Sequence record: MH494197.1
DNA length: 64,000 bases
Strand: one strand, 5' to 3'
Shown: one piece after another, positions 29,159 through 59,877 of the stretch
How the letters are laid out: the number at the start of each line of letters is the position of its first letter
Position numbering within the stretch: the first letter of the stretch is position 1
The notes under the pieces: model-generated
What the model saw: the letters and a program-made list of their open reading frames with translations, nothing else
What the model was told of the DNA's origin: nothing
Databases searched by the model: none
Translations under genes and position numbers: made by a program

Positions 29159-29203
29159 TAACCCTCTTCTGAATAAGTTCCTGTAAGTGCTGAATATAAC
29201 CCT

Positions 29204-41964: not shown

Positions 41965-42165
41965 TTAAGATCCTGAACTATTTCTGGATTCATATTCATT
42001 TATCTCATTCTGTAACTTAAGCATCAAAATTTGCATATTAATTTTTTGTACAAGGTGATTGAGAAATTTCTGTACTGTATCTTCTTGTTCTTTTGACCCA
42101 AGATAAAATAACATATTAAATTCCGATAACCTCAGAGCAAAATCTTCCTCTCCCCTCGTAAACAA
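41965..42165 (-). CDS. family B small protein
   Basis: LFYLGSKEQED. Confidence 0.6.
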   Translation of the reverse strand: MFTRGEEDFALRLSEFNMLFYLGSKEQEDTVQKFLNHLVQKINMQILMLKLQNEINEYESRNSSGS

Positions 42166-42199
42166 AAATCCCTGTACTTTGAAGCGTACAAATATTGGT

Positions 42200-42412
42200 T
42201 TACCTTTTTATACCTTTGGGTCTGCATTGTATCTCCTTTTTCAAACACCTTATTAGATTATCAACGTATTGGTCCTGTACTATTGTCCCTAGATAAAATA
42301 ATACATCGAACTCTGATAATTTTATATTGAAAGGATCTACATATACATCTTTAATAAACTCTTTGTACTTCAAAATATATGCATTAGGTAAATTCTTATA
42401 TATCGATTTCAA
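42200..42412 (-). CDS. family B small protein
   Basis: LFYLGTIVQDQYV. Confidence 0.65.
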   Translation of the reverse strand: MKSIYKNLPNAYILKYKEFIKDVYVDPFNIKLSEFDVLFYLGTIVQDQYVDNLIRCLKKEIQCRPKGIKR

Positions 42413-42626
42413 TGATCCTCCCTGACATACCTTGTATTAGCTTATCATACATATCTAGCATTACTTTTTGAATACTAATTAATACTGGCATCGTGCAAAT
42501 ATCAATGTCGTATATTAAGCTGTACTGGAATAATTCCTCTTCCTGCATTTGTACTAAATTAGGTAAAAGATAATTGTCTGCCTCTTCATCCGGTACTTGA
42601 ATGCATAACGCCATCCTTTTGTACAA
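42396..42626 (-). CDS. family A protein (C-terminal part)
   Basis: QEEELFQYSLI. Confidence 0.6.
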   Translation of the reverse strand: MYKRMALCIQVPDEEADNYLLPNLVQMQEEELFQYSLIYDIDICTMPVLISIQKVMLDMYDKLIQGMSGRIIEIDI

Positions 42627-42712
42627 AAGAATGTCAATATCACCTAACTCTTCTGCATAACCAAAAATACATATACTGATGTTTTTGCTATATTAAATTT
42701 CATATTCTTCTC

Positions 42713-43063
42713 TTATATGTGGAATTCACATACGTGTTGAACAAAATTCTTTGGAAGATGACAATGTGTAATCATCTGCTTTTGTACTTCCTTCATATCT
42801 TCGAATGTAAATCCTAAAGAATCATCATGTACTAACAAGTACTGAAACTCTTCTTCTTCAGAGATAGAACATAAATTCGGTACTGAAATTGTGTTTGTTT
42901 TTCTTGCACCTAATTTCCAATGAAAAGAATTATTGCATTTTCTGTACTCAAATATCTTCAACCCAGAACCTGTATTAAAATCAGCTACTACAATGTAACA
43001 TGAATTCTTACGTACAATACAATTGAACTTACGCATTATCTCCACCTCTCTCCGTCTGTACAA
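42713..43063 (-). CDS. family A protein
   Basis: SEEEEFQYLLVH. Confidence 0.6.
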   Translation of the reverse strand: MYRRREVEIMRKFNCIVRKNSCYIVVADFNTGSGLKIFEYRKCNNSFHWKLGARKTNTISVPNLCSISEEEEFQYLLVHDDSLGFTFEDMKEVQKQMITHCHLPKNFVQHVCEFHI

Positions 43064-43340
43064 GAGTACTGGTACGTTGTAGTTAGGGTAGGGACCATGT
43101 TTGTAATGGGCATATTATTAACAATAACGGTAACAGGCATAAGAATCGTCTCTTCTCTACTCTGTCCTGTCCTTGTGCAATTCATCTTTTGCATTTCATC
43201 GGACTCCATGAAATACAATACAAATGGTGCAATCCCAAGAACAATACACAAGACGATAAGGAAATTTAAAAATTCAACATAATTTTCTACCCTATGATTA
43301 ACGTACAGGTACTATATCAGTAATGAAAAGTACTGTCAAG

Positions 43341-43715
43341 CTAGTATTGCACTGTTCTAATGAAAGTACCTTTACTCATGGATTTAAGCTTATGAACCTC
43401 TTCCTGCATACCCTTAATTAACCCTAAAGGTATAGGTAAATCATGTACTAAGCTGTACTGAAAGTATTCTTCTTCAGATAAAGTACTAACATCTGGAATG
43501 CCAATTTTAGTTAGATAATCTTGATGTGTTGACCAATAAATTATATCTTCAGTACTATTGTACTCCCCATATACTGAACAATATTGATGAATATCTTTCC
43601 TGTACCCTTGAGCAATAAAGAACTTATCTACTGCATTACCAGCATTAATAGAATTCACTTCGATTGTCACAGTACTTGAGCTTGTTTTTCCTTTACTATG
43701 CATATTAATCCCCAA
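43341..43715 (-). CDS. family A protein
   Basis: LSEEEYFQYSLVH. Confidence 0.65.
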   Translation of the reverse strand: MGINMHSKGKTSSSTVTIEVNSINAGNAVDKFFIAQGYRKDIHQYCSVYGEYNSTEDIIYWSTHQDYLTKIGIPDVSTLSEEEYFQYSLVHDLPIPLGLIKGMQEEVHKLKSMSKGTFIRTVQY

Positions 43716-43891
43716 ATTAGATATCGAACACTATCAGCTTGATAGTTAGTTCCTACTGTGTGTTTTAATATTAACTCATCTTTCAGTACTGAACATTCTG
43801 CATTAGATATAGGAAGAGAATTAATTCTTTGAATTTCTGGTCGCAAAATACCGCGAAGCTTGCGGTAATCTTCGTATGATAATATTTTCAT
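43667..43891 (-). CDS. family B small protein
   Basis: HTVGTNYQ. Confidence 0.65.
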   Translation of the reverse strand: MKILSYEDYRKLRGILRPEIQRINSLPISNAECSVLKDELILKHTVGTNYQADSVRYLIWGLICIVKEKQAQVL

Positions 43892-44238
43892 TGTTTAGTA
43901 CTCAATAATGTGTTCTTCATAATCACCATTAGGCTCTGTTTAGCTTCTTTCATTAGTACTATCATTTTATGTACTAATGGCATAGGAAATTCTAAATCCC
44001 ATACTAATGATTCTTGAAAGTATTCCTCTGGTGATAAAGTACTTAAATCTTTAATATCAACGTGCTTGTATATTTTATTTTCGTAATTAACAAATGATAT
44101 ATATAAATCATTAATATAAGAATCATACGTAATTGTGAATGGCTTACCCTTGTAGTCCATTACATCTCTACATAGACTACTTTTGATATATATATGTTCA
44201 TAGGATTTATATACCTTGAGTTGTATATTAGTTTTCAT
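43888..44238 (-). CDS. family A protein
   Basis: LSPEEYFQESLVW. Confidence 0.65.
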   Translation of the reverse strand: MKTNIQLKVYKSYEHIYIKSSLCRDVMDYKGKPFTITYDSYINDLYISFVNYENKIYKHVDIKDLSTLSPEEYFQESLVWDLEFPMPLVHKMIVLMKEAKQSLMVIMKNTLLSTKQ

Positions 44239-44471
44239 ATTTCTCTTTATTAGATTGTGTGGTTTTATAGTGAATGAAATCTATTAATGTAATCAAGTAC
44301 AACGTCAAATAGTACTCTTGTTGATCTGTACCTAATGATACAAAGAACTTGTGCTCATAGATTAAAACCTGTTTCTCTTCAAATGGACATTTAATCCTCT
44401 GTATAGGCTTAAGTAAATGATAGTACTTATTAAATCTATGATACATTTCTAGTTCTGTCAGTACTTTCATA

Positions 44472-44693
44472 TTAAACACGTACTCCATTAGCTGTAGCAT
44501 CACGTAAAGCTGTCAAATACTTCTGTACTGCTTGCTCTTGCTTATTTGTACCTAAAAGTATATACATCCATAATTCACTGTAATGTACATCTTCTGTATA
44601 AGGGTTGTTGTAACTTTTTGATAATATAGCATCAAATTCAGATGCATGAACCCTTGTGAACTTAAGAATATCTTGTTGTGTTATGATTCTCAT
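44472..44693 (-). CDS. family B small protein
   Basis: MRIITQ start; ILLGTNKQEQAVQKYL. Confidence 0.7.
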   Translation of the reverse strand: MRIITQQDILKFTRVHASEFDAILSKSYNNPYTEDVHYSELWMYILLGTNKQEQAVQKYLTALRDATANGVRV

Positions 44694-45533
44694 ATTTTTC
44701 CTGTACTATCTGTATAAGAATACCTATGTGTGAATTAACAGTTCTCTCTTGATGCTGTGTTCCTAAGAGTGTCAGTACTATCATATCTGAACGCAAAAGA
44801 TTTTTTCAAGTTCACTTATATCAGTTCTTGAATCAAGTGCCATATATTTGTGATTATTCTTCCTGAATAGTGCCAAGTACTCTTGATTTGATATTTCCTT
44901 CATAGTTTATCCCTGATGCCATTTAAAAGTGCTCTAATATGTTCCTGTACGAATTTGTACTGACTGTCTGTTCCTAGAGTGAGTAGCAATCTTAAATCTG
45001 AACTTTTGATGTGATATTCTAAATCATTATTTGATTCTTGCATCAGTTTCTTAAAGGATGAGAAGTTTGCAGCCATTAGTTCAATGTATTCTGCTGTTCC
45101 TAGTGGTTTGTGTATTGGCTGTTTGTGCATTTTAATTTTATTACCCTTTGAGTGTATTAATGTAATTATACACATTGGCTTTTGATAGTTAGTTCCCAGT
45201 GTAGCTTGAACATAGATTTCATTTAACTTAATAATTTTATCAGTATCTGGTAGTTTTGATGTGTTAATGGCAAATAACTTCAAAACAGTCCATTTAAGAT
45301 TGTTAGGTATTCTTCGTCGGTAATGATTCGCATTTGCATTGGATAAACCTTTTAGTTCTTTGATGTAATCATTAATATTGCATTCTTGATAGTTAGTCCC
45401 TAGGGTAGCTTGAACATAGATTTCACTCATTAGAATATTTTTTCTTCATCAGGTAAATCTGTGGTCTTTGCTATATACAATTTTAGAATTAAACTACTTA
45501 ATAGTTCGTGGTATTCACTTGGTGAAAGGATTT

Positions 45534-45749
45534 TCATTTGCATGTTCTCAGTACAGATTCTTTAAGTTCATCGATGTAGTCCTCAACGAATTGCTCTTGG
45601 AAGTTAGTTCCAACATATAAAAGAACTCTTAAATCTGCTCTAAGTAACTCTTTTTCATCCTCATCTATATCAGACAATGTTATGTTTAAGAATTTACTTG
45701 TATTAAAGATTAACAATTCTGTTTGTTCACTGTGGTTTAAAATTTTCAT
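45534..45749 (-). CDS. family B small protein
   Basis: LYVGTNFQEQFVEDYI. Confidence 0.75.
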   Translation of the reverse strand: MKILNHSEQTELLIFNTSKFLNITLSDIDEDEKELLRADLRVLLYVGTNFQEQFVEDYIDELKESVLRTCK

Positions 45750-46162
45750 AATCTCTTTTTGCTTTCCTCGACAGTAGGTACAAATACGATTCTTCGTATT
45801 GTGCTTGGAAGTTTGTGTTTAAGAGTCGAAACAACTTCTGTTCTTCTAGAACGAGTTGCTTATCTTCATAACAACGGTAGCGTATCAACTTTTTGTATTC
45901 GATGTTGATTACATCCATTACTATAAGCCCATGTTCATCATCTGTCAAGTGCTTCATGCTTTTTTCTTTTCCTGATGTGTTTAGTTAAAAGGTATATTAG
46001 TTTTCTGATGTATTCTTCCTGATAGTTTGTTCCTAGGAGTGCAAGAAGTTTTGCTTCAACTAAAGCTAATTGACGTTCTTCGAATGTGTGTTCCAGTATG
46101 TACTTTGGGTTTGATTTTTAGATATTGCACTATTAGTTTTCATTACAATCTTATGATATTCA

Positions 46163-46420
46163 TTAACTGTTAGGATTTTTAAATTCTTGAGCATGTACCT
46201 TTTCCTTTATAGAGAATTTAAGATATCGAAGCATACTTTCAATGTAATACTCTTGTCTGTCAGTTCCAAGAAAGTACAGGAGTTGAATGTATAAAACTTC
46301 TGCACTCCTTTCGGCATGTGACTTGTTTGTGTCGTTTGGAAGTTGATTTGTAAGTTTTCTGGATTTAATTAATCGTTCTTTTAACTCATCGTCTGTTAAG
46401 TATATCATTTCATTTTGCAT
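46163..46420 (-). CDS. family B small protein
   Basis: YFLGTDRQEYYI; near-identical to 46457..46645. Confidence 0.75.
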   Translation of the reverse strand: MQNEMIYLTDDELKERLIKSRKLTNQLPNDTNKSHAERSAEVLYIQLLYFLGTDRQEYYIESMLRYLKFSIKEKVHAQEFKNPNS

Positions 46421-47562
46421 TTACTTTTTCCATAATAGTAATTTTGAGATATTTAATTATACGTTCAATGTGATACTTTGCCTATCAGTTCCAAGAAGGT
46501 ATGGTAATGACTGGAATAAAACTTCTGCACTCCTTTCTGCTGGGGTTTGGTTTGGGTCATTTGGAAGTTTATTTGTAAGTCTTTTGGATTTATCTAGTCT
46601 TTCTGTTAACTCATCATGTGTTAAGTATATCATTTCATTTTGCATTTAATGTTCCTTACGTAAATTGTCTGGATTAAAAGTGAAATCCATTTTTCTACAT
46701 ATTGGTTTTGATACTGTGTGCCTAAAAGACTCTGCATTTTAAACTCTTCTTCGAGTGCATATCTCGTTTCTATAGTAAAGCTTAAATGACCATATTCTTT
46801 ATCGTATCTTCTCAGTGCTTCCCCAATTCTATCAAATCTTTCTGCTATTCTGATGTTATTAATTTTATTCATCGCATTCATCGATCAGTACACCTTAGTG
46901 GACGGGTCATTTGATAAAAGTACAGCTTACCTTTGATTTCCAATAGTAACTCAGCAATTAATCGATTTACTTCTGGCTCTTGATAGTTTGTCCTAACAAT
47001 GCACCCATCTTTAACTCACGCATCATAATCATTTTCTTACTGTGTTGAATTTCTGGGTTGTGATAGATTGTATTACGTTTGTGTGTAATTTTTGTCATAC
47101 GCTCGGTATATTCATCTTTACTTAAATTGATCATTTGCATGTTCATCAACCTCACATTTATTTTCGATACAAATCATTAGTTCTCTAAGATAGTTTTTAT
47201 CTTACCTTCCTGATGGTTCGTCCCGAAAGTTGCATAACTCTGCTTCTATCATTTTGATTCTTCTGGTGTCAGGTTTCAATCTTTTGTTATTGAAGATTTG
47301 AATCCTTATATCCCTTGATGCATTTAAACGTTTTGATATTCATGGAAAGATAAATTAATCATTTACTTTGTATCTCTCTCTTGAGGGCATCAATTAACAA
47401 CAGTACAGCATTCTCTTGATAGTTTGTTCCTAAGACTGAAAGCATCTTAATCTCATTTACTACGATCAACTTCTTTGAGCGTTCAATAATGTTACTATTA
47501 TAAACGGCGTTACGTGCTGGATAAGTTTTGCAAGACGATCATAATATTCATCTTTACTTAAA

Positions 47563-47811
47563 TTAATCATTTGCATTTCTCGTACATTTACTTAGTTTAC
47601 TCCCAATGTATTTCTTAAGTGTAATTATATATTCCTCTACATAATACTCCTGATAGTTAGTTCCTAAGAATGCACATAGCTTTGTCTCACGCTTCATAAT
47701 CATCTTATTTTCGTGTTTGTTTACTTCACCGAAATGGATTTCATTAAGTTTAGGTAAGATTTTTGCTTGGCGTTCTTTATATTCAGATTTACTTAAATTA
47801 ATCATTTGCAT
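47563..47811 (-). CDS. family B small protein
   Basis: AFLGTNYQEYYVEEYI. Confidence 0.75.
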   Translation of the reverse strand: MQMINLSKSEYKERQAKILPKLNEIHFGEVNKHENKMIMKRETKLCAFLGTNYQEYYVEEYIITLKKYIGSKLSKCTRNAND

Positions 47812-49963
47812 TTACTTTGGATCTCCTTGACTAATGCATCAACCCACATGTCTATATACATTTGTTGATAGTTTGTCCCTATGAGTGCCCTGCATAGAGT
47901 TCAGCTATCATTGCATGTTTTAGGTTGGCAGGATGCTCTTATCAGATTGAATCTTTACTCTTCTGTTGGCACATGTTTTCAGGAGTCTGATGTATTCAAA
48001 GCCTTGTAATTTTCTCATTCTTTAGATATCACCTTGTTACGTAAGGCACTTAACAATACGTCAGTGTAGATGTTTTGATAGTTTGTTCCTACGAAAGCAC
48101 CCAACTTCATTTCAGCTATTATAACACATTTGTCCTCTTGTGCAATAGACTTGTCTAAAGAAATACTAACAACTTTCCTTCTTATAGCTTGTAATCTCCA
48201 ATGATACTGATACTCATTTAGGGTTATCATTCTCTCGCCTCCATATCTCGGTTCTAATGTGTTGACATTGTGCTTCGATGAACATATCTATTGATTTGGC
48301 AATTGCGTTTTTATCTGTGCCAGTCATCAGTACAAGCATCTCGGCCTCACAGTGAAGTAAACGCATGATATCATAGGGTAATATTCCAGATACCGTGTCA
48401 TAGTGTTTCTGTGCCAGTGTCTGTAATAGTTTACAATACATTTTGTGATTTAGTCTGTGTCGCATTGTTTATTCCATTCTTTTTGGCCCTCTGGGTTTTA
48501 TATTGGATTTGGTTTCTTAATGCTGATAAGTATCGTTGAATGAACAGATCTTGATAGTTTGTTCCAATGAATTTCATAAGATAAAGTTCACCGTTGATAA
48601 CATCCACTTCAGGTGCACCATATAAGGCATTGTTTTTCTAAGGGCATGGATTAAAGAGAATAGGGCAGTTTGATACTCAACTCCTGATAAAGTCTTCATG
48701 TTTTGTGAGCCAATAATCATCTAGTTTATCCTGTATAACATTCATTAATTGTTCGACATATTCTGTGCAAAACTTATCTTGATATTGAGTCCCATAAAGT
48801 ACAGCAACCATAGCTCATTAACTTTAGCTCGCATTTGGTTCCATGTAAGGCTGGGGTCATCGTAGACTATCCTTGCTATAGGGTTAGTTTACGGACTATA
48901 GTTTCATATTCATCTAGTGTTAAGTGTTTCATTTACATTTGTCCCTTATTAGATCAGTGAGGGCAACTATGTGTGCAACAACATACTCTTCCTGAAAGTT
49001 CGTCCCAGTACAGCCATCATGCGTATATCGGTGGTGTTTATCCTGTGTTCCCTTACACATAAACCTTCTGTGTGAGGAAGTGTAAAATATTTGTTTATTG
49101 CAGCAATGATAATTTTATTCTTCTCGGAATTACTTAAATGTTTCATAGTTTGCTCTTAATGTATTTCTGGAGTGCAATTATATACTCATTCAAGAAGTGC
49201 TCTGATAATCTGTGCCGAGGAATGCACCCAATAGTATATCATTTTCCAATACTAATGCTAAGTTCAAATCATCAGTCTCTTCATATACTATGAGAATTTC
49301 AAGTTGTCTGGCAGCGACGCGTTCGGTATATTGATTTGAGTTTGCAATGATATTCATAGTTTACTCTTTATGTAATTCTTGAGTGCAATTAAGTATTCCC
49401 CTACATAATACTCCTGAAAGTCTGTATCCAAAAATGCACCCATAAGTAAATCTTTTTCTAATACCCTTGATAAGTTAAGGTCTGCATTTGAAAGGTATAT
49501 AAGTAAGATTTCACCCTGTGCGGAATTGAAACGTTTCTTATATTCTTCTGGTGTTAAAAAATCATAGTTTACTCTTAATATCTTCTATTAAAAATGAATC
49601 CAATCGTCAACATACTCTTCCTGATGGTTTGTGTTCAGTACAGCCAACATGCGGATCTCTGCTCTTGCAACTTGGATTTCAGTTTTAGAAAGGTCTTTGC
49701 TGATATCAAACATTAAGTCCATGTATTTCAAGATAAGACCGAATGATTGGGTTCGTGTTATAGTTTTCATTGTTTCCTCGTGGACAATATTTCATTTTTC
49801 AATGCATCCATATATTGAATCACCCATCTTCCCTGATAGCTTGTTCCCAATGTAATCAAAAGGTATAACTCAATTCGTTCTAAGTTTGTGTCTGTGTTAT
49901 AAATCTTTACCATGTTTTTACGTAACAGTTCTTGATAATCTTCTTTATTTAAAATACGCATTT

Positions 49964-50161
49964 TCATAGTCTACCTTTTATGTCCCTTCGTAATTCTTGT
50001 AAGTATAGTTCGATATACTTTTCTTGATAGTTAGTTCCTATGAAAAGTTTCATAACCAATTCACGCTTATATGCAATACCACGGATATGTGACATATGTA
50101 GGATATATGCCATGTTGGATATGAGTGTGTGGTTGTGCTCTTCTTCAGTTAAAATACGCAT
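49964..50161 (-). CDS. family B small protein (first gene of the array)
   Basis: MRILTEEEH start; LFIGTNYQEKYIELYL. Confidence 0.75.
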   Translation of the reverse strand: MRILTEEEHNHTLISNMAYILHMSHIRGIAYKRELVMKLFIGTNYQEKYIELYLQELRRDIKGRL

Positions 50162-50309
50162 AGGGACTCCATTAAAAATAATATCAATCCCATAATATAC
50201 GATTCATATAAAAGTCAATAACATTTTATTCGTAATACCCTTTATCGAAGTCGCTAAGGTTACCCGCCCTTTAGCCCCTACGCATTTTGCCATAGTCCAA
50301 TCCTTTTAT

Positions 50310-50379
50310 TCATAAAAGTCAAGGGATTACCTATGCATTTTTTAACGCTGAAGTTTAAAAATGCCTTGACTTTTTATGA
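50310..50379. repeat. nested inverted repeat at the array/early-region junction
   Basis: TCATAAAAGTCAAGG ... CCTTGACTTTTTATGA arms enclosing a GCATTTTTTAAC/GTTTAAAAATGC inner stem; third ATAAAAGTCAA copy at 50208. Confidence 0.7.
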
Positions 50380-50637
50380 TTCAGTACTAAATCCTTTTAC
50401 GCATTAATCCTTCGTTACGCTTACGATTATCTGTGTATCCCCATAGTCCTGCCATACTTCCACGCCAGCCGTCGCCCGGTTAGTCGTGCTGTCATCTGCT
50501 TAATGGTCTTAGGCTTTAGTGGAACCTGTTGCAGTACTGTACGCATAGTATCATCGACGTTATCGTGTACGCCTGCAATAGTGCCTAGGACGCTGTATAC
50601 GTGTATAGAACATATGTATGCCCTCCTGATATAGTTA

Positions 50638-50657
50638 AGGCCGCTACAAGGCGGCCT
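50638..50657 (-). terminator. GC-rich hairpin, probable terminator
   Basis: AGGCCGC-CTTGTA-GCGGCCT followed by TAACT. Confidence 0.5.
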
Positions 50658-51646
50658 ATGATGTTTGGTGATGTGTAACGCTTACAGTCCTAAGATAGTG
50701 CGTGCTTCGTTACGTTCCGTGCACAGCTGCATGATGTGAGCAAGTAAGTCCTTGCTAATGTATCCGGTGTTCATAGCTTCACGAATAGATACATCATAAG
50801 CACCGAACCCGTGCGAACGATACGCACATCATTCAGGTTAGTATTATAGATACCGCCGAGATCAACGGCTTCGAATACTACATCAACAGAATATTCATTG
50901 TTGCCATCGTGGAAGTTTTCCAGTGCAATAGTATTGGATACCGCCCAACGTTTGCAGTTTCAATGATGCGGCACTGTTCCGGTTGGATAGTGCCATTACT
51001 TACAGCGTACTCCAGTGCATCTTTACCAAAAGTCCGAGCCAGTACTAAAACGTCAGCGAAGGAAGTGATTGAGAAGGTCATGATAAAACTCCTTAATTTA
51101 GGAGGGAGAACCATTTCCTCTCTATGTAAAACATTATACATGAATCTAAGTACTATGCAAGTACTTTTACATTTTAATACCGGATTCAGGTAGCGGTGAG
51201 ATCCATATTCTGGATCGGTTTCGGTCCAGTACTGTAAATCGATAGTACCTTTCGCGTTAATCTTGTCTACCAGCTTATTCATCTTAGCGTATACTACGTC
51301 AGCATCGATGCGTTTAAAGCCAGTAGCTTTAGTGAAGTAGTAGTGATTTGCTTCACTATCATTAAGGATATACCGAGCACCGTTTGCCGTTTGTGCGATA
51401 ATGATTGAGTATTCTACGTTACGGTCGAGGCCGTCGATGAATACAGAGGAAACATTAGTACGGATGAAAGCTTTAACGATAGCGATTGAAGTAGTCATTT
51501 TGAATCTCCTAACTTTGTGGGCCGTCGCACCATTGCCGCCCTACGAGATACATTATTGCAGTACTGATATACTTTGTCAATACTTTTTATTAATAGTTTT
51601 AGTTCCACCAGCAGATAGTTACTCACCGTTATTAACTATATATTTT

Positions 51647-51724
51647 GGATACACCTATGCACCCTGTGGGCTAGTTTTTGTCTATGCGTATATATAGCAG
51701 GACTGACCGAGTCAATCCCTTTTT
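51647..51724 (-). repeat. CCCAYAGGGTGC element, copy 1
   Basis: GGGATTGACTCGGTCAGTCC..GCTATATATA..TAGCCCACAGGGTGCATAGGTGTATCC. Confidence 0.85.
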
Positions 51725-52022
51725 ATTCTTTTTGTTAGATGATTCTCCAATCATCAACGATCATGGTAAGATACCGAACCAGTGATTCGAGTGATTCGTG
51801 TTCTCGATAGTCTGCCGCTCCACCAGCGGTACAAGTACAGCCGATTAAGCCGTTTTGTAGTTCCGGATCTTTACGTCGATCTGGTTGGCTTTAGCTTCTT
51901 TCAGTACTTCAACCGGGCGAGAGCGATAGACATAATGTTTTACTCCAAACTATTGGCGGGAGAACTATTCCCCGCTCTATGTAAAACATTATACATTACT
52001 GGTTAGTACTGTCAAATAGTTT

Positions 52023-52280
52023 TTATGAAATATCTTCGATGTAGTCGGCCCATTTCATTTTTTCAGTACTGTCAATGGCTACCGGATTATTTGGATCAAA
52101 CCATTCACCATTACCGCAGTACATACCCACGGCTACGGTTTTATAGCCATCCCGGGCCGCACACCACGACATTGCACGATAGATATGGCCTTTAACTGGT
52201 TGCAGTACTGGTAACGTTTTATGGTCTTCTACGTAGGCCATAGCTTGTGGATTTACCCGATATTGTGTGAACTGTTCCAT
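52023..52280 (-). CDS. hypothetical early protein
   Basis: 85-aa ORF with its own promoter (52309) and RBS. Confidence 0.65.
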   Translation of the reverse strand: MEQFTQYRVNPQAMAYVEDHKTLPVLQPVKGHIYRAMSWCAARDGYKTVAVGMYCGNGEWFDPNNPVAIDSTEKMKWADYIEDIS

Positions 52281-52716
52281 TATGTTTCCCCTTGTAGTTA
52301 GTAAAGTTATTACATCAGTACTATCAAGCTATGTCAATAGTACTGAAATAAAACTTTTAGATTAGATTATTGAGGCCGTCAATGGTAGACTCACTTTCTT
52401 CTTTCTCCCATTGTCGGTAGTACTTCCATGCTTCATGATAGGTGGCGATCAGTTCATCTTTTGATCCGGTTACATGCCAGTACTGAATCACGGTGAGCGG
52501 TGTTATAGATAGAATCGAATGATTTCTTCTCTTCTGCCGTTAGCTACTTCCCGCATCAGTTCATCAAAGTTAGCCATTTTATTACTCCTTTTAGTGGGGA
52601 GGATATCTCCCTATGCAAAACATTATACTTTGTTTTAGTTATTATGCAAGTACTTTTTCATATAAACATTAAATTCTACACCGCCGTAACCTTCCACGAT
52701 GATATGTTTTGCGTTA

Positions 52717-52902
52717 TCACGTTTGCACATAGTGAAACCATCGTTTACGTGTTTTGCATTTTCGGGCGACATCACCGATAGCGGCACATACGGCACTAAT
52801 AACAGTATTCCGCAAAGTACTGGTATCATTGGCGGTCATAGTAGTTTGCAGTACTACGTTGTCGTATACGTGTGCATTGATAGTGATTTCGATAGTGTTC
52901 AT
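52717..52902 (-). CDS. hypothetical early protein (frameshifted)
   Basis: own cassette promoter at 52950. Confidence 0.55.
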   Translation of the reverse strand: MNTIEITINAHVYDNVVLQTTMTANDTSTLRNTVISAVCAAIGDVARKCKTRKRWFHYVQT

Positions 52903-53233
52903 GGTGTATCTCGACTGGCGGGAGAACTATTCCCCGCTCTATGTAAAACATTATACGTTAATCTAACTACAATGCAAGTACTTTTAAATTTTATTTCCGA
53001 TATAGTCCGGTCTATTCTTTTCGGTCATACGCTTTGCTAATGTTTGCATATGGCTTATTGCTTGTAGTGTATCCTCTTCCGGGATGAATCGAGATAATCA
53101 GGATCATTCTTCACCTTGCAATGATTATGATAGCGTAGTACTGCCAGTACTTTTTAACTTCTTCTACTGTCATAATAAGTACCCACTTCGTTAGCTTTCA
53201 GGTTAGTATCAATCATCAGTGGATTTTTGTAGT

Positions 53234-53440
53234 TCACAAAACGAGTAGTTTTCTCGATAGCGAATCCCATATAATCCAGCTTACTAACAGTACATTCATT
53301 CTTAAAACTTCTTTCGCTGCATCGATGGCTGATTGCATGGATAACCGACCATCTAAATTAATGTTTCCAAATGATCCACCAGCAGAAGTAGGATTACCGT
53401 TCATATCTTTAATGATCATAGTAGCGGAGTAGCTGGACAT
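53234..53440 (-). CDS. hypothetical early protein
   Basis: own cassette promoter at 53494. Confidence 0.6.
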   Translation of the reverse strand: MSSYSATMIIKDMNGNPTSAGGSFGNINLDGRLSMQSAIDAAKEVLRMNVLLVSWIIWDSLSRKLLVL

Positions 53441-53527
53441 AATTTTGTTTCCTTTTATTGGTGTGGGAGAACTATTCTCCCTTGATGTAAACTATTATAC
53501 AGTACTGATATACTTTGTCAAATACTT

Positions 53528-53931
53528 TTATTCGCCCATATAGATTAGATTATCATCGCCTACATAGGATCGCAAACGTTGATTTCTTCGCAGTACTTCG
53601 TGAATACATCGCCATAGTGACCTAAACCACGATCCCAAAACCAGTTCCGTGACCTTCGCGGGTAAGGAACAGATCATGACCAGCTTGCTCATAACCGTAA
53701 TCAATAAACATACCGCGAACTACTTCCAGATCATTACCGTGTTTCTCAATGAAGCGAGAACATGCAATCACTGCCGCTTGATGGGCTTGCTCTGATAATT
53801 CATAATCTTCCGTAATCGCCGTTCTCATTGTGTACAGTACTGAATTGCATAGCTTCAATGTAAGCTACAACCATTGCAGCATGATTTTTATCGTTAGTGA
53901 TGTTCCGAGCGAGATTAGTAGTAGTAGACAT
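53528..53931 (-). CDS. conserved phage protein with GHD(L/F)(F/W)LTRxGHGxGFWD motif
   Basis: GHDLFLTREGHGTGF; one extra T restores WDRGLG; own cassette promoter at 53983. Confidence 0.7.
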
Positions 53932-54347
53932 GATTTTATTCCTTTTAGTATCGGGGAGAACTATTCTCCCTTGATGTAAACTATTATACAGTACTAATAT
54001 ACTTTGTCAATACTTAATTACGTTTAAAATGATATGTGCCTTTATCATCCTGTACGCCCCATACTGATTTACCATCAACACCAGTGAAGCCGGATTGTAA
54101 TTCAATATGGAAACCATTATTATCAACTACAAAAACTTTTTATTTTCATCCCGATAACATTGATATTCTGAATCAACATTAAAGGCCGCATCATTCAGAA
54201 GATTAGAAGCGTAAATGCAAGTCATTGTAGTCATGATTTTATTCCTTATTGCCGTGGAACCGTTCCTCTCGATATAAAACATTATACTTGATTCTAAGTA
54301 TAATGCAAGTACTTTTTAAAATAGTTTTCAGTACTGAATACTTATAT

Positions 54348-54435
54348 AATAGATACACTTCCGCACCCTATGGGTCAGTGAGTTATCTCTCAATGGATAT
54401 ATATAGCAAAGGACTGACCGAGTCAATCCCTTTTT
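54348..54435 (-). repeat. CCCAYAGGGTGC element, copy 2
   Basis: GGGATTGACTCGGTCAGTCC..CTGACCCATAGGGTGCGGAAGTGTATCTATT. Confidence 0.85.
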
Positions 54436-54507
54436 AATCTTTTTATCGTGTTACCTTACTTGCTGCCACATCACGCTTTTTATAGTACTGATTCCAGATA
54501 TTGCTGG

Positions 54508-54825
54508 TTAAACCGTAATCAAGTACTTTAATAAGTCCATTACGATCCCGCCGATATTCTGTTTTCTGATATCTCTTATCGTTAGTGTTGATAATGTATC
54601 ATCGACGTGTTGTAGTGCATCAGCAAAGCGGTGCTGGCGTTCAATGGCATTACGTTTAATATTGTACTTTAATTCATTGCACGCGTTTACGTGCTTTACA
54701 CTGCCTTTACTTGCAGTACTCAACCGATCCATAACGATAAACATATTATCAGGATCGCATAAATGCATATGCACCTTTGCAAAGTACTGTTTCAACTGAG
54801 GGCGGTCATAGTCTAAAAATTCCAT
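54508..54825 (-). CDS. hypothetical early protein
   Basis: 105-aa ORF with AAGG RBS. Confidence 0.55.
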   Translation of the reverse strand: MEFLDYDRPQLKQYFAKVHMHLCDPDNMFIVMDRLSTASKGSVKHVNACNELKYNIKRNAIERQHRFADALQHVDDTLSTLTIRDIRKQNIGGIVMDLLKYLITV

Positions 54826-55892
54826 ACCTTACATTCAGTTTCATTTTGTTCGACACCCGCATCACAATTCGCGACCTTAATCACTAACCGATCATTTAAA
54901 GCGAAAACTATACGGGAAGATCCGCCCGATGATCTCCAGTCCAGCTAACCGACAAGCTGAAAGGATCTCTTTGTTGGTTTCCATTTCTGACAGTGTACGG
55001 ATGAATTTAGTATAATTACGCATTGCATGTTCTCCTTGAGTTAATGAAACTATATTACAGTACTTTACTATCAATGGCAACTACTTTTTAACATTAACGG
55101 CGTGAATCACTTCCTTAGTGTTTTTAGTACTGAATACTTTCGCCGCTCCTTGTTCGACCGTGATACGATAGCGACCATTAACATCAACCATATTAATAAA
55201 GTCCGGCGTGCTGAATGGTGTTGTTTTGCATTTGAGTACTGTTAACAGTTCCACCAGCGATGTAGTTTCTTTGATACGTTTTTCTAAAGTAATCATTTTG
55301 TTTCTCCCCGTGTTGGTATGTACATATAGTACTAAAACATTTGAGTACTGTCAATTAGATAATATTATATTTCTTAAAATAAAATGCGTCTTGTGTTGGT
55401 TGATACTCGATACCGTTACCGTTATTGACTTCAACTAATAAACCTTTGTCAATAAGTTTTTAATAGTACGATACCCTTGTTGAAAATTGGTAAAATGTGA
55501 ATCATTACGAAAGGTATAACCGTGCTTAACTGCTTCATCAATAGTTTTCTTTTCGATTTTAGATAATTTCATTTTGTTTCTCCCGTGTTGGTATATGTAC
55601 ATAGTACTAAAACATTTGAGTACTGTCAACGTGATATTAGTTTTATTTTCTTATTGTATTGTTGATGCTCATAAAGGTTTATCTTTCCTGTGTTCTCGAT
55701 TACTATCCTGTTGTTAGTGTCCACATCGATTACACGCAGTTTCCGTTGCTTAACTTCCGGGTAATAGGTTACCATTAATAAACTCATTAGCAAGCTGTAC
55801 GGCCTTTGTGATGATTCTCTTCGGTGCTTTATAGTGTACCCGTAAGATGTTATCTTTATATAGTTGAACCTTAATCATTTTGTTTGTCCTAT

Positions 55893-55916
55893 AAAAAGGC
55901 GGGAACTGATCCCGCC
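55893..55916 (-). terminator. Rho-independent terminator
   Basis: GGCGGGA-TCAGT-TCCCGCC followed by TTTTT. Confidence 0.8.
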
Positions 55917-57581
55917 GTGTTGTTAGTACTGCAAGTTATTAGATAACCGGCGGCGTTTACTGTATACTGTTACACGATTACCCTTACGGTCGTGTCGGAT
56001 CTCTTTCTGGTTGCGAATCAGTTCACTTGGACGCTTAAGGTTTGCCGTGATCCGCGTGAGTCCATGCATTGGCATTTACCTGTACTTTGATATCAGAACC
56101 AGCGATAAACTCATCTTGTGCGTCAGTATTGCCGCCAGCATATCCGCTCGTTTTAGTTCTGCTGCTGTTAGTACTGGCTCAGGTGAATTCACAATATCAG
56201 AGATCTTTGAACTGTACGGCCCAGCGTTGGCCTTTCGGTGCATCTTTGCCCATGTCTTTAAATGCTGCTCCTTCCTCGCGTGCAACAATACGGGCAGCTT
56301 CACGGGTAGCGTAGAATTTAGTAATCATGGTATACATCCTATTAGTTAAGTTAGTACTACAAGTTAGAGTCTATTATAAAGTACTATCTGGGCAATGTCA
56401 AATAGTACTTTAAATGGATTCTATTACATGTCTTTCTTACGTTTTACATCGTGGTAGCGAACTGTTATTTCTTTGTTGATCTCTTCCTCGATGCGGTGAA
56501 TAACTTTTTCTTTCGGGTTGAAACCTATAACGGTTTCTTTAATGATCTCAAGCCCGTGTATTCGCCTTGTGTACCGTAACCGTATGTAAAGGTTTCGTGT
56601 CCCGTGTCTTCCAGCGGTCGCCAATTAACGCAGACACGTAGCAAGAGTGGTAAGTATTGCCGTGTGAATCAGTCCACCGATTAACGTTAATGTCAAAGGA
56701 GGTTACAATTTTCAATTCTACTTTCTGGGCAAGGATCATAGCCATTTTATTTCTCTCTTTTAGTTAGGAGGAACCATTCCCTCACTTGATGTAAACTATT
56801 ATACAGTACTAAGATACTTTGTCAATACTTATTTTTGGAAAGTTTACGCATTAATTCTACGCTTTCTTGTGAACGTTTTGCTACCGGCAAGCTGCATGGG
56901 TAGTAAACATTTTGTATAGTCTGACGCTTTGCCACCGAACCGAGCGGCACGTTCACGGGCACTTGGAACTAATACTATTTCTTTCTTGCAGATAGTGCAC
57001 TTAGCCATTTTATTTCTCTCTCTTTGTTAGAGGGGAACCGTTTCCTCACTCGATGTAAACTATTATACAGTACTAAGATACTTTGTCAATACTTAATTAT
57101 TGTAAATGTCGTGAATAGTGATAAAGTTTTTACGACCGTAAACCTGCAAATCAATATCAATGTAGTGCTTATCTAGTACATCCTCGACGCTTAACGCGGT
57201 GTCGTGGATATCTTCGTAGAATTGAGTATCTACAATCTTGCTTAAGTCATCCGGCGTTAACTCATCGTTAAGCAGTTGAACCGCCGGATATCTGCTTCAC
57301 GTTTCCAGTCTTCCAGTTAGTAGTCAGTACTTGTTCGATTTCGTTAGCTGTCAGTAGAATCCGCATTTTTATGTTTCCTTATCAGTGGTTGATGTAAGTA
57401 TTATACTCGTTTACTTTCTATTGTCAAACTATTTTATCAGGGAGTTTTTCGTATGTCTTACTCGACTACTTAACGGGGTTACTTGTTTCGTTCCCCGTCC
57501 TGATGTAAAACATTATACTTGATTCTAAGTACAATGCAAGTACTTTTTAAAAATAGTTTTCAGTACTAGCCACCAGCAAAC

Positions 57582-57653
57582 AATAGATACATTTATGCAC
57601 CCTGTGGGCTGATTTGTTTCTATGCGTATATAATAGCAAAGGACTGAATCCCT
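57582..57653 (-). repeat. CCCAYAGGGTGC element, copy 3
   Basis: GGGATTCAGTCCTTTGCTATTATATA..CAGCCCACAGGGTGCATAAATGTATCTATT. Confidence 0.8.
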
Positions 57654-58959
57654 TATTCAATTATTTTTAAACTTCTTTCGGGTTGCGATAGGTGATAGCG
57701 TTCGGGTACATTTGTTTAATGTTATTCCATGCCCGGTTGACATTGTAACCACTTGATCGAATCAGTTGGTTACTACCGACACCTTGAAACACTACTTCGA
57801 ATAAGAATTCTTTCATGCTTTCACCTCGCGATCTGCTTTACCTTTACGCCGACATTACTAATTGTTCGCGTTGCCATAAGTCGAGTGATACAAAAGTTTT
57901 GCGGTATCACTTTTAGGATACTCGCCATTAGTACCTAACCGATAAAACAGATCTTTCAGTACTGATAATTCTACTTGGATCATTATACTTTCTCTTTGTT
58001 GGGAGGGAACTATTCTTCCGATATAAAACATTATACACTTTATTCAGTACAAGTACTTTTAATCTTTCAGCCAATGATCCTGAATGAATTTTTCACCGGA
58101 ACCTTGCTGCATTGATTGTAACAGACGTTCACGATGAGCGGCGGCGAATTGCTCAGTACTATGCGTTACACCGGTTGATATCTGGATTCACCATTGGGGC
58201 TGATGTATTGTACATCCCACGGTTTTTCGTTAGTATCAGACCATTTACGAACGATTAGTTGACCTTGCATTTTTCTTTCTCTTAGTGGGGAGAATCATTT
58301 CTCCCCTTCATGTAACTTATTATACAGTACTAGATTATCTTGTCAATAGTTTTATTCACCTTGTTTGAATTTAGTTTTCTCCATTGATTCCATGATTGCA
58401 ACCAATACGCCGTGGATCTCGCTTAACGCGGAATCACTAAAAGCATTAATGAATAGTCGATCATTCTCGCGAATATTTTTAATGTACTTTTCAGCAGTAG
58501 TTGCGAATTCATTCAACGGTAGATCAAATGCTTTATCCCATGATGGATGGCGTAATTGTAACAGTACTGGATTATCACGATCACGGGAAAACGTACCAGT
58601 GATGAAACATACGCCCGAATACTTTCGAACTGGCAACGGACTTCCTTTGTGATAGTAGTATGAATGTACATTTATTGTTATCCTCTATTAAATTAATATT
58701 ACAGTTTATGAATCAATTCTTTATCTAAGCGATAGCGTACATTATTAATAGTAACGGCATTGTTTTAATGCTACGCTGTACAGGTCCACCAGCAATAACA
58801 AATGTTGCTTTATTACCCCGAACAATGATAGCACTTCCGTGATTACCGAAATCATCTTGTACTAAAATACTTGATAAGTTTTCCATTTTATTTCTCTTAG
58901 TAGGGAAGATGTTTCCTTGATGTAAGTACTATAACAGTACTGAAAACTAATTGCAAGTA

Positions 58960-59313
58960 CTATGATAAAATCATGATAGGATATTCACTATCGATCAGTA
59001 CCTCGAATCCGAACCCTTCGTACCATTCTTTAAGATTAAAGGCGTTATCTTCTCCGTATCGCATTCTAAGATGATACAATCTGAATCATCAGCGGCATCG
59101 ATAAAGGCATTCATTAATTCGTTACCTTCACCATTGCCCCGACTATCAGGATCAACATAAAGAGAATCAATGAAAGCAACACGGTCATAATCAAGATCCG
59201 GTGCAATGATTCCACGTTTAACAAACCAGTACTGCAATTGTGCTACTTTGCTGTACCTGATAACCAGTGATCTCGCCATTGTCAGTAGTACGCGTGATAT
59301 GTTGTATTCCCAT
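58960..59313 (-). CDS. GNAT-family acetyltransferase (frameshifted in the assembly)
   Basis: FIDSLYVDPDSRGNGEGNELM (acetyl-CoA-binding motif A) and, in the next frame, LKEWYEGFGF (motif B); own promoter at 59343. Confidence 0.8.
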
Positions 59314-59877
59314 GATTTCTATCCTCAGTTAAGATATAAAACATTATACACTATCTTTCAGTACTGTCAATTACTTTTATCTCATAGATCTATGCCAACA
59401 ATTACGCGGATCTCTTTAAAAGTACTATCATGATCCTCCGGCAAGTAATACAATACATGCACCTATAACGGCCCGGCGTCGATTCTCAGGGATTTTACCG
59501 CCGCAGTCGAGGCAATGTACAGTGATTCTCTTTGTGCGTTAATTTGCTTTCTAGCGTGGTTAACGGCGGCCTGAATCACTGCGTTAATCTCGTCTTGTTC
59601 GGCCCCGTCTTTCGCGAATCCTACAGCCATTATTTTAACCTCATTATAAAAATACTATAGTACTGTAATGCTACAATAATACTACTAGTGCTAATCTTAT
59701 TCAAACCACATGATACTACATATCCACCAGCATTACCACGGATAGTAACGCCTTTGTACTGTCTATATAAATTCAACTGCGTATATTGCCTTTGATCAAG
59801 AATTGATCAGAATTATACGCCTTATGCTAAATTGATCCAGTACTTTTGATCATTTATTGATCGATGTTATATAGTTA

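Follow-up and report, generated by a model that had tools for sequence, protein, structure and literature searches.

Directly following the terminal repeat of the Escherichia coli jumbo phage CMSTMSU (Escherichia phage CMSTMSU, Asteriusvirus) is a real block of some 30 old, individually conserved paralogous genes encoding small, predicted three-helix proteins. The window, that is the whole 64,000-nt stretch of record MH494197.1 that was analysed, was searched with an HMM of the family derived from the intact genes of a relative, WPEC3. Matches occurred on the minus strand only, with best E-values down to 4e-26, and comprised 27 units at 44.2–50.2 kb, three at 42.0–43.9 kb and two at 28.97–29.32 kb. 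A first-pass annotation had described a tandem array of about 30 divergent small genes, and HMM mapping and PHROG matches bear this out, although five corrections were needed. Its count of about 27 genes between 44.2 and 50.2 kb agrees with the 27 units matched, but the strand of the genes has to be corrected to minus. The three further copies that it placed at 42–43.9 kb are present but interleaved with members of a different family, and the 'orphan' at 28967..29158 is a family member but not a solitary one, having a broken second copy beside it. The units are listed below, with the supporting evidence in brackets (tblastn refers to searches with WPEC3 genes).

44228..50161, minus: main block of 27 head-to-tail LGTNYQE units, read from 50161 downwards (HMM, tblastn, PHROG)
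49964..50161, minus: unit 1, 65 aa, intact, first gene past the terminal repeat (ORF list, PHROG, tblastn)
49767..49967, minus: unit 2, 66 aa, intact (ORF list, PHROG, tblastn)
49561..49770, minus: unit 3, broken, truncated in one frame, lower bound approximate (ORF list, HMM, tblastn)
49354..49566, minus: unit 4, broken, open frame without a start codon (ORF list, tblastn)
49146..49357, minus: unit 5, broken, two frames (HMM, tblastn)
48929..49146, minus: unit 6, broken, 0.79 of the WPEC3 gene in one frame by tblastn and a C-terminal piece in a second frame by HMM and ORF list (ORF list, HMM, tblastn)
48677..48932, minus: unit 7, corresponding to WPEC3 gene 8, broken, three frames; tblastn found no counterpart of WPEC3 gene 7 in the window (HMM, tblastn)
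48431..48720, minus: unit 8, broken, three frames (HMM, tblastn)
48214..48465, minus: unit 9, 83 aa, intact, most divergent motif variant (ORF list, tblastn, structure model)
48015..48230, minus: unit 10, 71 aa, intact (ORF list, PHROG, tblastn)
47802..48018, minus: unit 11, broken, three frames (HMM, tblastn)
47563..47811, minus: unit 12, 82 aa, intact, modelled with AlphaFold (ORF list, PHROG, tblastn)
47359..47576, minus: unit 13, broken, two frames (HMM, tblastn)
47118..47365, minus: unit 14, broken, truncated, bounds approximate (HMM, tblastn)
46881..47155, minus: unit 15, broken, two frames (ORF list, HMM, tblastn)
46630..46881, minus: unit 16, 83 aa, intact (ORF list, PHROG, tblastn)
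46413..46645, minus: unit 17, broken, truncated, in the closest paralog pair (ORF list, tblastn, pairwise identity)
46163..46420, minus: unit 18, 85 aa, intact (ORF list, PHROG, tblastn)
45956..46194, minus: unit 19, broken, two frames (HMM, tblastn)
45727..45957, minus: unit 20, 76 aa, intact (ORF list, PHROG, tblastn)
45534..45749, minus: unit 21, 71 aa, intact (ORF list, PHROG, tblastn)
45318..45543, minus: unit 22, broken, three frames (HMM, tblastn)
45131..45320, minus: unit 23, broken, truncated, bounds approximate (HMM, tblastn)
44900..45133, minus: unit 24, in one frame throughout, as the tail of a 176-aa ORF (44900-45430) fused because of breaks upstream (ORF list, tblastn)
44692..44903, minus: unit 25, broken, two frames (ORF list, HMM, tblastn)
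44472..44693, minus: unit 26, 73 aa, intact (ORF list, PHROG, tblastn)
44228..44503, minus: unit 27, intact, end of the main block (ORF list, HMM, tblastn)
43667..43891, minus: outlying member, 74 aa, intact, second-family genes on both sides (ORF list, PHROG, tblastn)
42200..42412, minus: outlying member, 70 aa, matching PHROG 4148 less strongly (E = 3.5e-5), a diverged tandem copy of the next member with no WPEC3 counterpart (ORF list, HMM, PHROG)
41965..42180, minus: outlying member, broken, N-terminus shorter than in WPEC3 (ORF list, HMM, tblastn)
29136..29317, minus: remote member adjoining the orphan, broken, two frames (HMM, tblastn)
28967..29158, minus: remote member (the orphan), 63 aa, intact (membership test, tblastn)

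As the sequence stands, about half of the units are broken: of the 31 with a WPEC3 counterpart 17 are affected, six being split over two frames, four over three, six truncated in one frame and one without a start codon. Because frameshifting indels relative to WPEC3 occur at about 4 per kb across the whole window, and the 29 genes of the WPEC3 block are intact and gap-free, sequence quality accounts for these breaks better than decay. The overlapping start and stop codons reported initially are found at all 28 WPEC3 junctions (overlaps of 4–40 nt), where every start is ATG and the median pitch is 212 bp (range 194 to 260 bp); in the window itself, with so many units broken, the full picture emerges only from relatives, and what is said below of intact genes rests on these.

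All ten array ORFs tested matched PHROG 4148, a family of unknown function. Hence, the earlier statement that no described family is recognisable holds in so far as no characterised family matches, but the family had already been catalogued. No relative was found in Pfam, NCBIfam, PADLOC or the PDB, and the array proteins matched no helix-turn-helix or other nucleic-acid-binding family. An exhaustive HMMER search recovered only 60 family clusters among 1.84 billion representatives, all of 58–95 aa, and the weakest matches with a named source came either from records of Asteriusvirus phages or from assemblies of E. coli, several of them lying on contigs of about 350 kb. With tblastn, 34 of 50,697 phage records matched, all Escherichia or Salmonella. 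The LGTNYQE family thus appears to be specific to Asteriusvirus, none having been found in phages elsewhere. Hua et al. (2017; PMC5646251) mentioned an array of '>30 very similar genes' in phage 121Q, leaving the family unnamed and giving no function. This may be the same locus; since the main LGTNYQE block of 121Q comprises only 23 annotated genes, or 25 by HMM, the remark may instead refer to the neighbouring larger family.

AlphaFold, another of the checks first suggested, models unit 12 as a three-helix bundle (pLDDT 94.5) whose helices span residues 8-27, 33-47 and 54-81, residues 4 and 51 being joined by a strand bridge, and gives the same three helices for unit 9, the most divergent paralog (pLDDT 75.7). 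Family members are predicted to be cytoplasmic proteins of 65–93 aa in which a short N-terminal strand precedes a three-helix bundle, the LGTNYQE motif probably forming the loop and N-cap ahead of helix 3 and bridging to the N-terminal strand. Foldseek returned no match against the PDB below E = 1, and those with any probability were helical regulators and transporters only, at noise level. A three-helix bundle is compatible with many roles.

The array might be read as the recent adaptive amplification of a single anti-defence gene. In phage T4, tifA is amplified in tandem against ToxIN, and gene accordions are found in large DNA viruses; the tifA analogy had been drawn in the first-pass annotation. 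The head-to-tail tandem layout is the same, as is unit-sized gain and loss by unequal crossing-over: among the closest paralogs, the window lacks one unit of about 225 bp relative to WPEC3, which has one extra gene of that subgroup at the place of unit 17. However, paralog identity has a median of only 28% and a maximum of 63%, and the closest pair within the window, described as near-identical neighbours (46163/46457), shares just 73% of protein and 81% of DNA positions; a repeat at 45182/45386 does exist (57 nt, 82% identity). The copies thus appear ancient and diverged and are conserved across the genus, with slot orthologs common to phages from different continents. Recent tifA-like amplification is contradicted by these identities, and we find it scarcely credible.

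Comparison of eight genomes resolved 41 orthogroups, of which 17 occur in all eight and eight more in six or seven, always in the same order. Ortholog dN/dS is 0.21–0.38, against 0.22–0.30 in neighbouring genes, and three of four comparisons contain no ortholog pair with dN/dS above 1. Alignment columns have an entropy of 2.58 bits when paralogs are compared and of 0.18 bits inside orthogroups, in agreement with the proposal of one diversified family on a common scaffold. Judged from these alignments, the paralogs are old and each is retained by purifying selection. Array content does vary between isolates, with 25–33 copies per locus, but the slots are colinear and under purifying selection. 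This conservation bears on a further interpretation, that the array is largely dispensable and consists of tandem duplicates gathered while the genome was expanding into a larger capsid. This is the ratchet idea of Hua et al. (2017), who read the 121Q array as tandem duplication expanding the genome (PMC5646251). Varying copy number and a family without known function are what this would lead one to expect; yet good-quality genomes keep all copies intact, with ATG starts and coupled junctions, their dN/dS is that of genes under purifying selection, and the universal, colinear orthogroups scarcely vary within themselves. We regard dispensability as decidedly unlikely. On the other hand, a fast arms race would be expected to leave a different pattern from purifying selection with no pair above a dN/dS of 1 in three of four comparisons, and this weighs against the host-directed binders favoured below.

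The shared DNA core noted initially is real: ACWAACTATCAR occurs 11 times against 0.11 expected, always on the minus strand of the array. In WPEC3 all 19 motif Asn residues are encoded by AAC, a codon used for 37% of Asn in the rest of these genes, and all 17 Tyr residues by TAT; over seven genomes, AACTAT encodes the Asn-Tyr pair in every one of 77 copies, against 5 of 74 in 175 non-family ORFs. The rise in third-position information does not extend beyond four codons from the core. Furthermore, the two clear chimeras are both joined at the conserved motif, showing that recombination at the core, as had been conjectured, does happen. These observations would also suit a repeated DNA or RNA element as the selected object, a 12–15-nt core recurring every ~212 bp as a binding-site array or crossover point, with the protein motif partly its translation. 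Against this, where Asp replaces Asn, GAC and GAT are about equally frequent (4 and 5 copies), so that what is constrained is the Asn codon and not the nucleotide position; about half of the copies have a different core, an 8-mer of the core is at chance level outside the array, the spacing is irregular and the ORFs themselves are under purifying selection. A nucleic-acid element as the primary object of selection is, in our estimation, quite improbable.

The setting of the array in the genome is defined by three further features.

50260..64000, minus: part of the direct terminal repeat (DTR) inside the window (boundary at ~50,259 mapped from fEgEco12; GC step)
51988..61041, gene strand (minus): 11 perfect TTGACA-N16/17-TATAAT promoters in the DTR (promoter scan)
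50192..50218, minus: weak promoter-like site, TTGACT-15 nt-TATTAT, then a GGAG ribosome-binding site (read by eye)

In fEgEco12, the 20,993-bp DTR (PMC13070987) extends to 20,993, with the start of the first array gene at 21,091; in vB_Ec-M-J, a DTR of 21,525 bp is followed by the array match from 21,624 onwards. Transferred from these relatives, the inner boundary lies at position ~50,259 of the window, and the array begins about 100 bp into unique sequence, in the same orientation as the DTR genes. The window holds 12 perfect sigma-70 promoters against 0.15 expected, 11 of them in the DTR, and the scan (spacer 16–18 nt) found no perfect-consensus promoter within the array. The weak site between the DTR end and unit 1 has a 15-nt spacer, below the scan range. 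With no perfect-consensus promoter in the array, its timing has to be deduced from the surrounding genes, and these suggest early expression: in the distantly related PA5oct, genes in the DTR show high early transcription (PMC7318152), and in CBB RpoD-like promoters concentrate in the DTR region, the authors suspecting a host takeover role for short ORFs beside the repeat (PMC5259590).

The late-promoter motif TATAAATA does not occur anywhere in the 64 kb, where 13.8 copies would be expected; in the fEgEco12 structural module it precedes the major capsid gene and three further genes, two of them structural, by 36–60 nt. Its absence matters for the idea that family members are carried inside the virion and enter the cell along with the DNA, as do the diversified internal proteins of T4-type phages, whose hyperplastic locus likewise encodes small diversified proteins with a common N-terminal peptide and varies between isolates. 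The phAPEC6 capsid does contain an inner body (PMC7247149). However, none of its 62 virion proteins falls within the ~7.5–11 kDa expected for 65–93 aa, the nearest being 4.66 and 12.33 kDa (PMC7247149, Table 1), and the array stands at the promoter-rich early end rather than among head genes. Packaging in the virion is accordingly considered very improbable.

Our favoured reading, held tentatively and at a little short of even chances, is that the array is an early polycistronic set of diversified host-directed binders on one scaffold. Host RNA polymerase would produce an early, long polycistronic message over the block, with coupled translation. The paralogs have the hydrophobic core and the motif in common and differ at nearly all surface positions and in net charge (pI 4.4 to 10.0, charge -7 to +10, more than half basic); because each divergent surface is nevertheless retained, one scaffold may carry about 30 binding specificities, each member binding or neutralising a different host factor in takeover or counter-defence. 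The array evolves by birth and death: neighbouring genes cross over unequally, so that single genes are added or dropped, and now and then a chimera forms at the shared core. From their genomic context, the proteins may be the 'inhibitors or decoys' originally suggested. Alternatively, the proteins may serve the phage's own processes, whether as small regulators, in binding DNA or RNA, or as chaperone-like or adaptor subunits; the conserved end of the bundle would then dock on a single machine of phage or host. Conservation is highest in polar columns, those of the N-terminal strand and the G-T-x-x-Q loop, which lie together at one end of the model and suggest a common contact; selection resembles that on ordinary neighbouring genes, the basic majority would fit, and the noise-level Foldseek matches include regulators. 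Nevertheless, the lack of any match to nucleic-acid-binding families and the wide range of charge speak against one class of nucleic-acid binder, and there is no obvious rationale for thirty conserved versions of one housekeeping helper. We consider such a role unlikely, if the most serious competitor to host-directed binders.

Early host-takeover modules at genome ends have precedents. Bacillus phage SPO1 carries about two dozen small early genes in its terminal redundancy and T5 has a pre-early region in its terminal repeat, and the genes of both modules act against host functions in the first minutes of infection. Like the CMSTMSU array, these are many small co-oriented genes of unknown fold at a long terminal repeat with strong host-type promoters. 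However, theirs are unrelated genes, whereas the array has one fold in about 30 paralogs and lies just outside the repeat, without strong promoters of its own, and its early expression is a prediction. PA5oct (PMC7318152) and CBB (PMC5259590), jumbo myoviruses related by those papers to 121Q and PBECO4, also have long DTRs full of short hypothetical genes, with early transcription (PA5oct) and RpoD-like promoters (CBB), but the LGTNYQE family was found in no phage outside Asteriusvirus. Phage G, with about 35 zinc-ribbon genes in a lineage-specific expansion (PMC7824862), resembles 121Q in that one small domain has been multiplied into tens of tandem copies within a single jumbo-phage lineage; the reports on both phages do not define a family, nor do they treat its fold, its place relative to the genome termini or its evolution. 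Finally, while viruses, hosts and folds are unrelated and the analogy is one of genome architecture only, the terminal multigene families of large eukaryotic DNA viruses likewise consist of diverged paralogs near the ends, gained and lost as single genes and linked to interaction with the host.

The window covers positions 62,001-126,000 of MH494197.1, a 386-kb Asteriusvirus record. The window region 41,965-50,161 is 100% identical to this record, that of Escherichia phage CMSTMSU, and aligns at 60-99% with 35 other jumbo-phage records from Escherichia and Salmonella. Every gene of this region, the array of LGTNYQE-family genes, lies on the minus strand. A family HMM, trained on the genes annotated in WPEC3 (PV611058), a close relative, was run on the window, where the minus strand was the sole strand with matches. 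The members were located as follows:

44,228-50,161, minus strand, main block of 27 units
41,965-43,891, minus strand, three outlying members
28,967-29,317, minus strand, two remote members

The isolated copy that the first-pass annotation had placed at 28,967 is indeed present. All ten array ORFs compared with PHROG 4148, a profile with no annotated function, matched it significantly across most of its 74 positions (E 4e-25 to 1e-5), as did a remote copy (E = 1.4e-17) and the copy at 42200-42412 (E = 3.5e-5), while the truncated copy at 41965-42165 did not match the profile. The family is already catalogued, though uncharacterised.

The same annotation had proposed a DNA core shared through the LGTNYQE motif, and this core is real: ACWAACTATCAR occurs 11 times against 0.11 expected, on each occasion on the minus strand of the array. 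The repeat reported at 45182/45386 was also recovered; the pair 46163/46457, described as near-identical, shares only 73% protein and 81% DNA identity. Elsewhere in the window the core 8-mer is found at chance level only, and its use there as a general DNA element was rejected on this basis.

The gene packing is best seen in WPEC3, where all 28 junctions among the 29 genes of the main block overlap, by 4 nt in 11 cases and by 10-40 nt in the rest, with zero intergenic room for promoters or terminators. Every gene in this block starts with ATG, 20 are preceded by a Shine-Dalgarno-like core, and the start-to-start pitch is 194-260 bp (median 212). Internal promoters were rejected, promoter-like sites within the array numbering 48 against 58.8 in shuffled sequence, and there is no perfect (12/12) sigma-70 promoter inside the array. 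It is quite improbable that the array acts at all as a DNA- or RNA-level element, since the core is degenerate in about half of the copies and its spacing is irregular (194-260 bp). Nor does it resemble a non-coding repeat array of iterons or binding sites, because the ORFs of relatives are intact and under purifying selection.

As the sequence stands, 17 of the 31 window units that match WPEC3 are broken: six are spread over two frames and four over three, six are single-frame truncations, and one is an open frame without a start codon. In addition, the window lacks counterparts of two WPEC3 genes. Between 4530 and 53086, where the window is 96-98% identical to WPEC3, there are approximately 4 indels per kb of non-multiple-of-three length; segment by segment, the aligned part from 4.5 to 53 kb shows 3.8-8.5 per kb throughout, and homopolymer runs hold most of these frame-breaking differences. 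Pseudogenisation specific to the array in Escherichia phage CMSTMSU was rejected on account of this similar rate in every segment and its concentration in homopolymers. The record itself bears the flag UNVERIFIED_ORG, and the same genes are annotated as intact in WPEC3, fEgEco12, G17, JP4, SP27, SD-15_S21, 121Q and ph0011. Since the damage is not specific to the array and the genes are intact in relatives, the simplest and most likely explanation of the broken copies is that this single record is of poor sequence quality. Gene calls from the CMSTMSU window hence need checking against relatives, and what we say of intact genes rests on the relatives' sequences as they stand, the window sequence having been neither repaired nor joined.

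The initial statement that the genes belong to no recognised described family was borne out by comparison with Pfam, NCBIfam, PADLOC and the PDB, PHROG 4148 being their catalogue entry. The best matches in a Pfam-A scan reached 12-15 bits against cut-offs of at least 27, scans with NCBIfam and the PADLOC defence models returned only noise, and the best hit of a sequence profile search of the PDB had E = 0.94. An AlphaFold model, which the annotation had recommended, was obtained with AlphaFold2 from an alignment of 12 intact window copies and is a confident three-helix structure (pLDDT 94.5), in which helices at residues 8-27, 33-47 and 54-81 follow a short strand at the N-terminus. In this model a strand bridge links the Gly-Thr of the motif to residue 4, so that the motif would provide the helix-3 loop and N-cap, packed on the conserved N-terminus. 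The same three helices are predicted for the most divergent paralog (pLDDT 75.7). Foldseek identified no structural relative in the PDB (best E = 1.6), and in BFVD it retrieved family members alone, from 121Q, UB, PBECO4 and slurp01; the search for relatives among solved structures took in anti-restriction, anti-CRISPR, sponge and immunity-protein folds, none of which proved related.

An exhaustive HMMER search of 1.84 billion representatives returned 60 clusters, all of 58-95 aa, and no relative outside Asteriusvirus; the weakest matches with a named source were Asteriusvirus phage records or E. coli assemblies, several of them on contigs of approximately 350 kb. A word-indexed search of 5.8 billion proteins likewise found no relative outside the genus, and tblastn matched 34 of 50,697 phage records. 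By these searches the LGTNYQE family occurs in Asteriusvirus alone. It comprises about 30 small proteins, predicted to be three-helix bundles, whose genes stand in a gap-free, coupled arrangement.

Within a genome, the paralogs have a median identity of 28-29% and a maximum of 63%. Eight good genomes carry 25-33 copies per locus, which fall into 41 orthogroups, 17 of them represented in all eight genomes, eight in six or seven and 16 in four or fewer. Orthogroup order is colinear in these genomes bar two small local swaps, and with high copy number in 8/8 genomes and the universal orthogroups colinear there is no pattern of a single-copy ancestor. Column entropy is 2.58 bits between paralogs against 0.18 bits within orthogroups; 11 of 72 columns are conserved across paralogs, which range in predicted pI from 4.4 to 10.0 and in net charge from -7 to +10. 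Low identity between paralogs, conserved and colinear orthogroups, and conservation within orthogroups together indicate that the array is an old family in which each member has settled into a distinct conserved form, with no fresh amplification. The suggestion of recent amplification in the manner of T4 tifA is contradicted by these values, the closest pair in the window reaching 73% at the protein level; the 'accordion' model of recent tandem expansion was rejected on paralog identities, and with a median of 28% and a maximum of 63% we find it barely credible.

Selection on the individual genes resembles that on their surroundings. Median dN/dS between orthologs is 0.21-0.38, compared with 0.22-0.30 in neighbouring non-family genes, and in three of four comparisons no family ortholog pair exceeds 1. 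Each paralog is individually conserved, and it is improbable that the array is dispensable duplicated DNA.

Relative to WPEC3, the window is without one unit of approximately 225 bp among the three closest paralogs and has an extra diverged copy at 42,200-42,412. Mosaics of N- and C-terminal halves, which the first-pass annotation had advised looking for, were found as two clear chimeras with the junction at the motif. In the G17 clade, the first gene joins the N-half of the first WPEC3 gene to a C-half like that of the third gene, and a short G17 gene has its C-half in common with the sixth gene. Turnover is by birth and death, and chimeras at the core are rare. We doubt that the array is a cassette system, in which the short core, with its invariant synonymous sites, would be a designated crossover point for swapping the N- and C-terminal halves of some 30 paralogs. 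Were this so, a lytic jumbo phage would possess a recombination-based library of binder specificities near its genome end, and the conserved 'head' of the bundle would dock one common partner while the shuffled helices pick targets.

Codon usage at the motif is exceptionally uniform. Its Asn codon is AAC in 19 of 19 WPEC3 copies, against 37% elsewhere in the same genes (binomial p ~7e-9), and its Tyr codon is TAT in 17 of 17, against a background of 61% (p ~2e-4). Across seven genomes the motif Asn-Tyr is AACTAT in 77 of 77 copies; among 175 non-family ORFs of the same loci, Asn-Tyr is so encoded in 5 of 74 cases. Examples in the window are:

50024-50035, minus strand, motif codons of the family
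48075-48086, minus strand, motif codons of the family
47416-47427, minus strand, motif codons of the family

The conserved Gly, Thr, Gln, Glu and Leu residues use mixed synonymous codons, from which it follows that synonymous sites are otherwise saturated. Where Asp occupies the Asn position, GAC and GAT are about equally frequent, which favours a constraint acting on the Asn codon (decoding accuracy, for example) over one on the nucleotide as such; this explanation leaves TAT unaccounted for. AAC is the codon favoured in E. coli and TAT is not known to be favoured, so codon optimality was rejected as the sole cause. The reverse complement of the core was also rejected as an antisense promoter, there being no conserved -10 element at the right distance. 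Either accurate decoding of a critical residue or a role of the core at the nucleotide level could lie behind the invariance.

The array begins just beyond the direct terminal repeat (DTR). In fEgEco12 the direct terminal repeats of 20,993 bp are experimentally supported (PMC13070987), and the first array gene starts at 21,091; in vB_Ec-M-J, which has a repeat of 21,525 bp, the array match starts at 21,624. The array start is 98-99 bp past the DTR end in both phages, and these positions put the inner end of the repeat at approximately 50,259 in the window, 98 nt upstream of unit 1, the first array gene. A step in GC content from 0.35 to 0.41 coincides with this mapped end. The whole window contains 12 perfect sigma-70 promoters against 0.15 expected, 11 of them within the repeat part (50.3-64 kb):

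51988-61041, minus (gene) strand, eleven perfect TTGACA-N16/17-TATAAT promoters within the repeat
9890-9918, twelfth perfect sigma-70 promoter

Most of the eleven share the spacer end AGTACTG before TATAAT, which suggests a family of near-identical early promoters. Unit 1 itself is preceded only by a weaker site (TTGACT, 15 nt, TATTAT) and by a GGAG ribosome-binding site. At 50638-50657 there is a GC-rich hairpin (stem of 8 bp), flanked by a repeat gene and by the small gene that precedes the array; as it has no T-run on the gene strand, it would be at best a weak terminator ahead of the array.

The T4-type late-promoter motif, TATAAATA as quoted in PMC5259590, occurs 0 times on either strand of the 64-kb window, against 13.8 +/- 3.8 (SD) expected, as though late promoters had been purged from it throughout. 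The fEgEco12 structural module (190001-240000) has five copies of TATAAATA, the expected frequency, four of which lie 36-60 nt upstream of genes, the major capsid gene included. The array directly follows the terminal repeat, and the region in which it lies is rich in promoters and free of late ones.

In PA5oct, a distant relative, transcription of the repeat genes is high early on (PMC7318152), and the authors of the CBB genome inferred likewise for short ORFs beside the CBB repeat (PMC5259590). A literature search found no transcriptome or proteome time course for Asteriusvirus; for expression of the array in the first minutes, the one indirect indication is that the window lacks the late-promoter motif. 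It is highly improbable that the array encodes packaged internal virion proteins of the T4 type, as none of the 62 virion proteins of phAPEC6 (PMC7247149 Table 1) is of the family's size, ~7.5-11 kDa, bearing in mind that small proteins yield few peptides. Annotated among the terminal-repeat genes of relatives are a serine/threonine protein kinase, a GNAT acetyltransferase and a DksA-type zinc-finger protein, all candidates for early modification of the host and neighbours of the array. The fEgEco12 gene g044 is homologous to the repeat region beyond 55 kb in the window.

We tentatively favour a joint reading, to which we give a little under an even chance, in which host RNA polymerase would transcribe the array early and as a polycistronic unit, and the paralogs would constitute a panel of binders with different specificities aimed at host functions, either for takeover or for counter-defence. 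The main rival, which we think unlikely, is that the proteins would act in processes of the phage itself, the conserved end of the bundle contacting a common partner. The nearest known architecture is that of the early host-takeover clusters in or beside the terminal repeats of SPO1 and T5 and, by inference, of PA5oct and CBB. Like the SPO1 and T5 clusters, the array consists of co-oriented small genes adjoining a terminal repeat. Such clusters are served by strong host-type promoters; here eleven perfect sigma-70 promoters are situated upstream in the DTR, and immediately before unit 1 there is only the weak site. We rate the array as a terminal early-region accessory cluster in which a single fold has diverged into about 30 conserved paralogs.

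Jumbo phages have hundreds of genes without an assigned function, and those that act earliest on the host are expected in the stretch adjoining the terminal repeat. Here, the array offers about 30 conserved variants of one confidently modelled small scaffold, in one operon-like unit and with surfaces that differ almost completely. If these are host-directed binders, they would supply a ready panel with which to discover new points of contact between phage and host in E. coli and Salmonella, and a natural example of one fold re-used for many specificities.

The array is not the only gene family of the window. A second multigene family extends over ~19,000-44,700 on the minus strand, with products of 103-193 aa that share a conserved acidic-aromatic motif (EE-E/Y-FQ-Y/E-SL) in their C-terminal part. 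In WPEC3, BLAST connects at least 16 members, and the three short members compared with PHROG 13866 (no function annotated) all match it. Examples in the window are:

42396-42626, minus strand, second-family gene
42713-43063, minus strand, second-family gene
43341-43715, minus strand, second-family gene
43888-44238, minus strand, second-family gene

At 42.4-44.2 kb, four short members of this family lie in between LGTNYQE genes. Two more paralog groups of 6-7 members each (146-197 aa) are found at ~24-41 kb, and tandem gene families make up most of the window.
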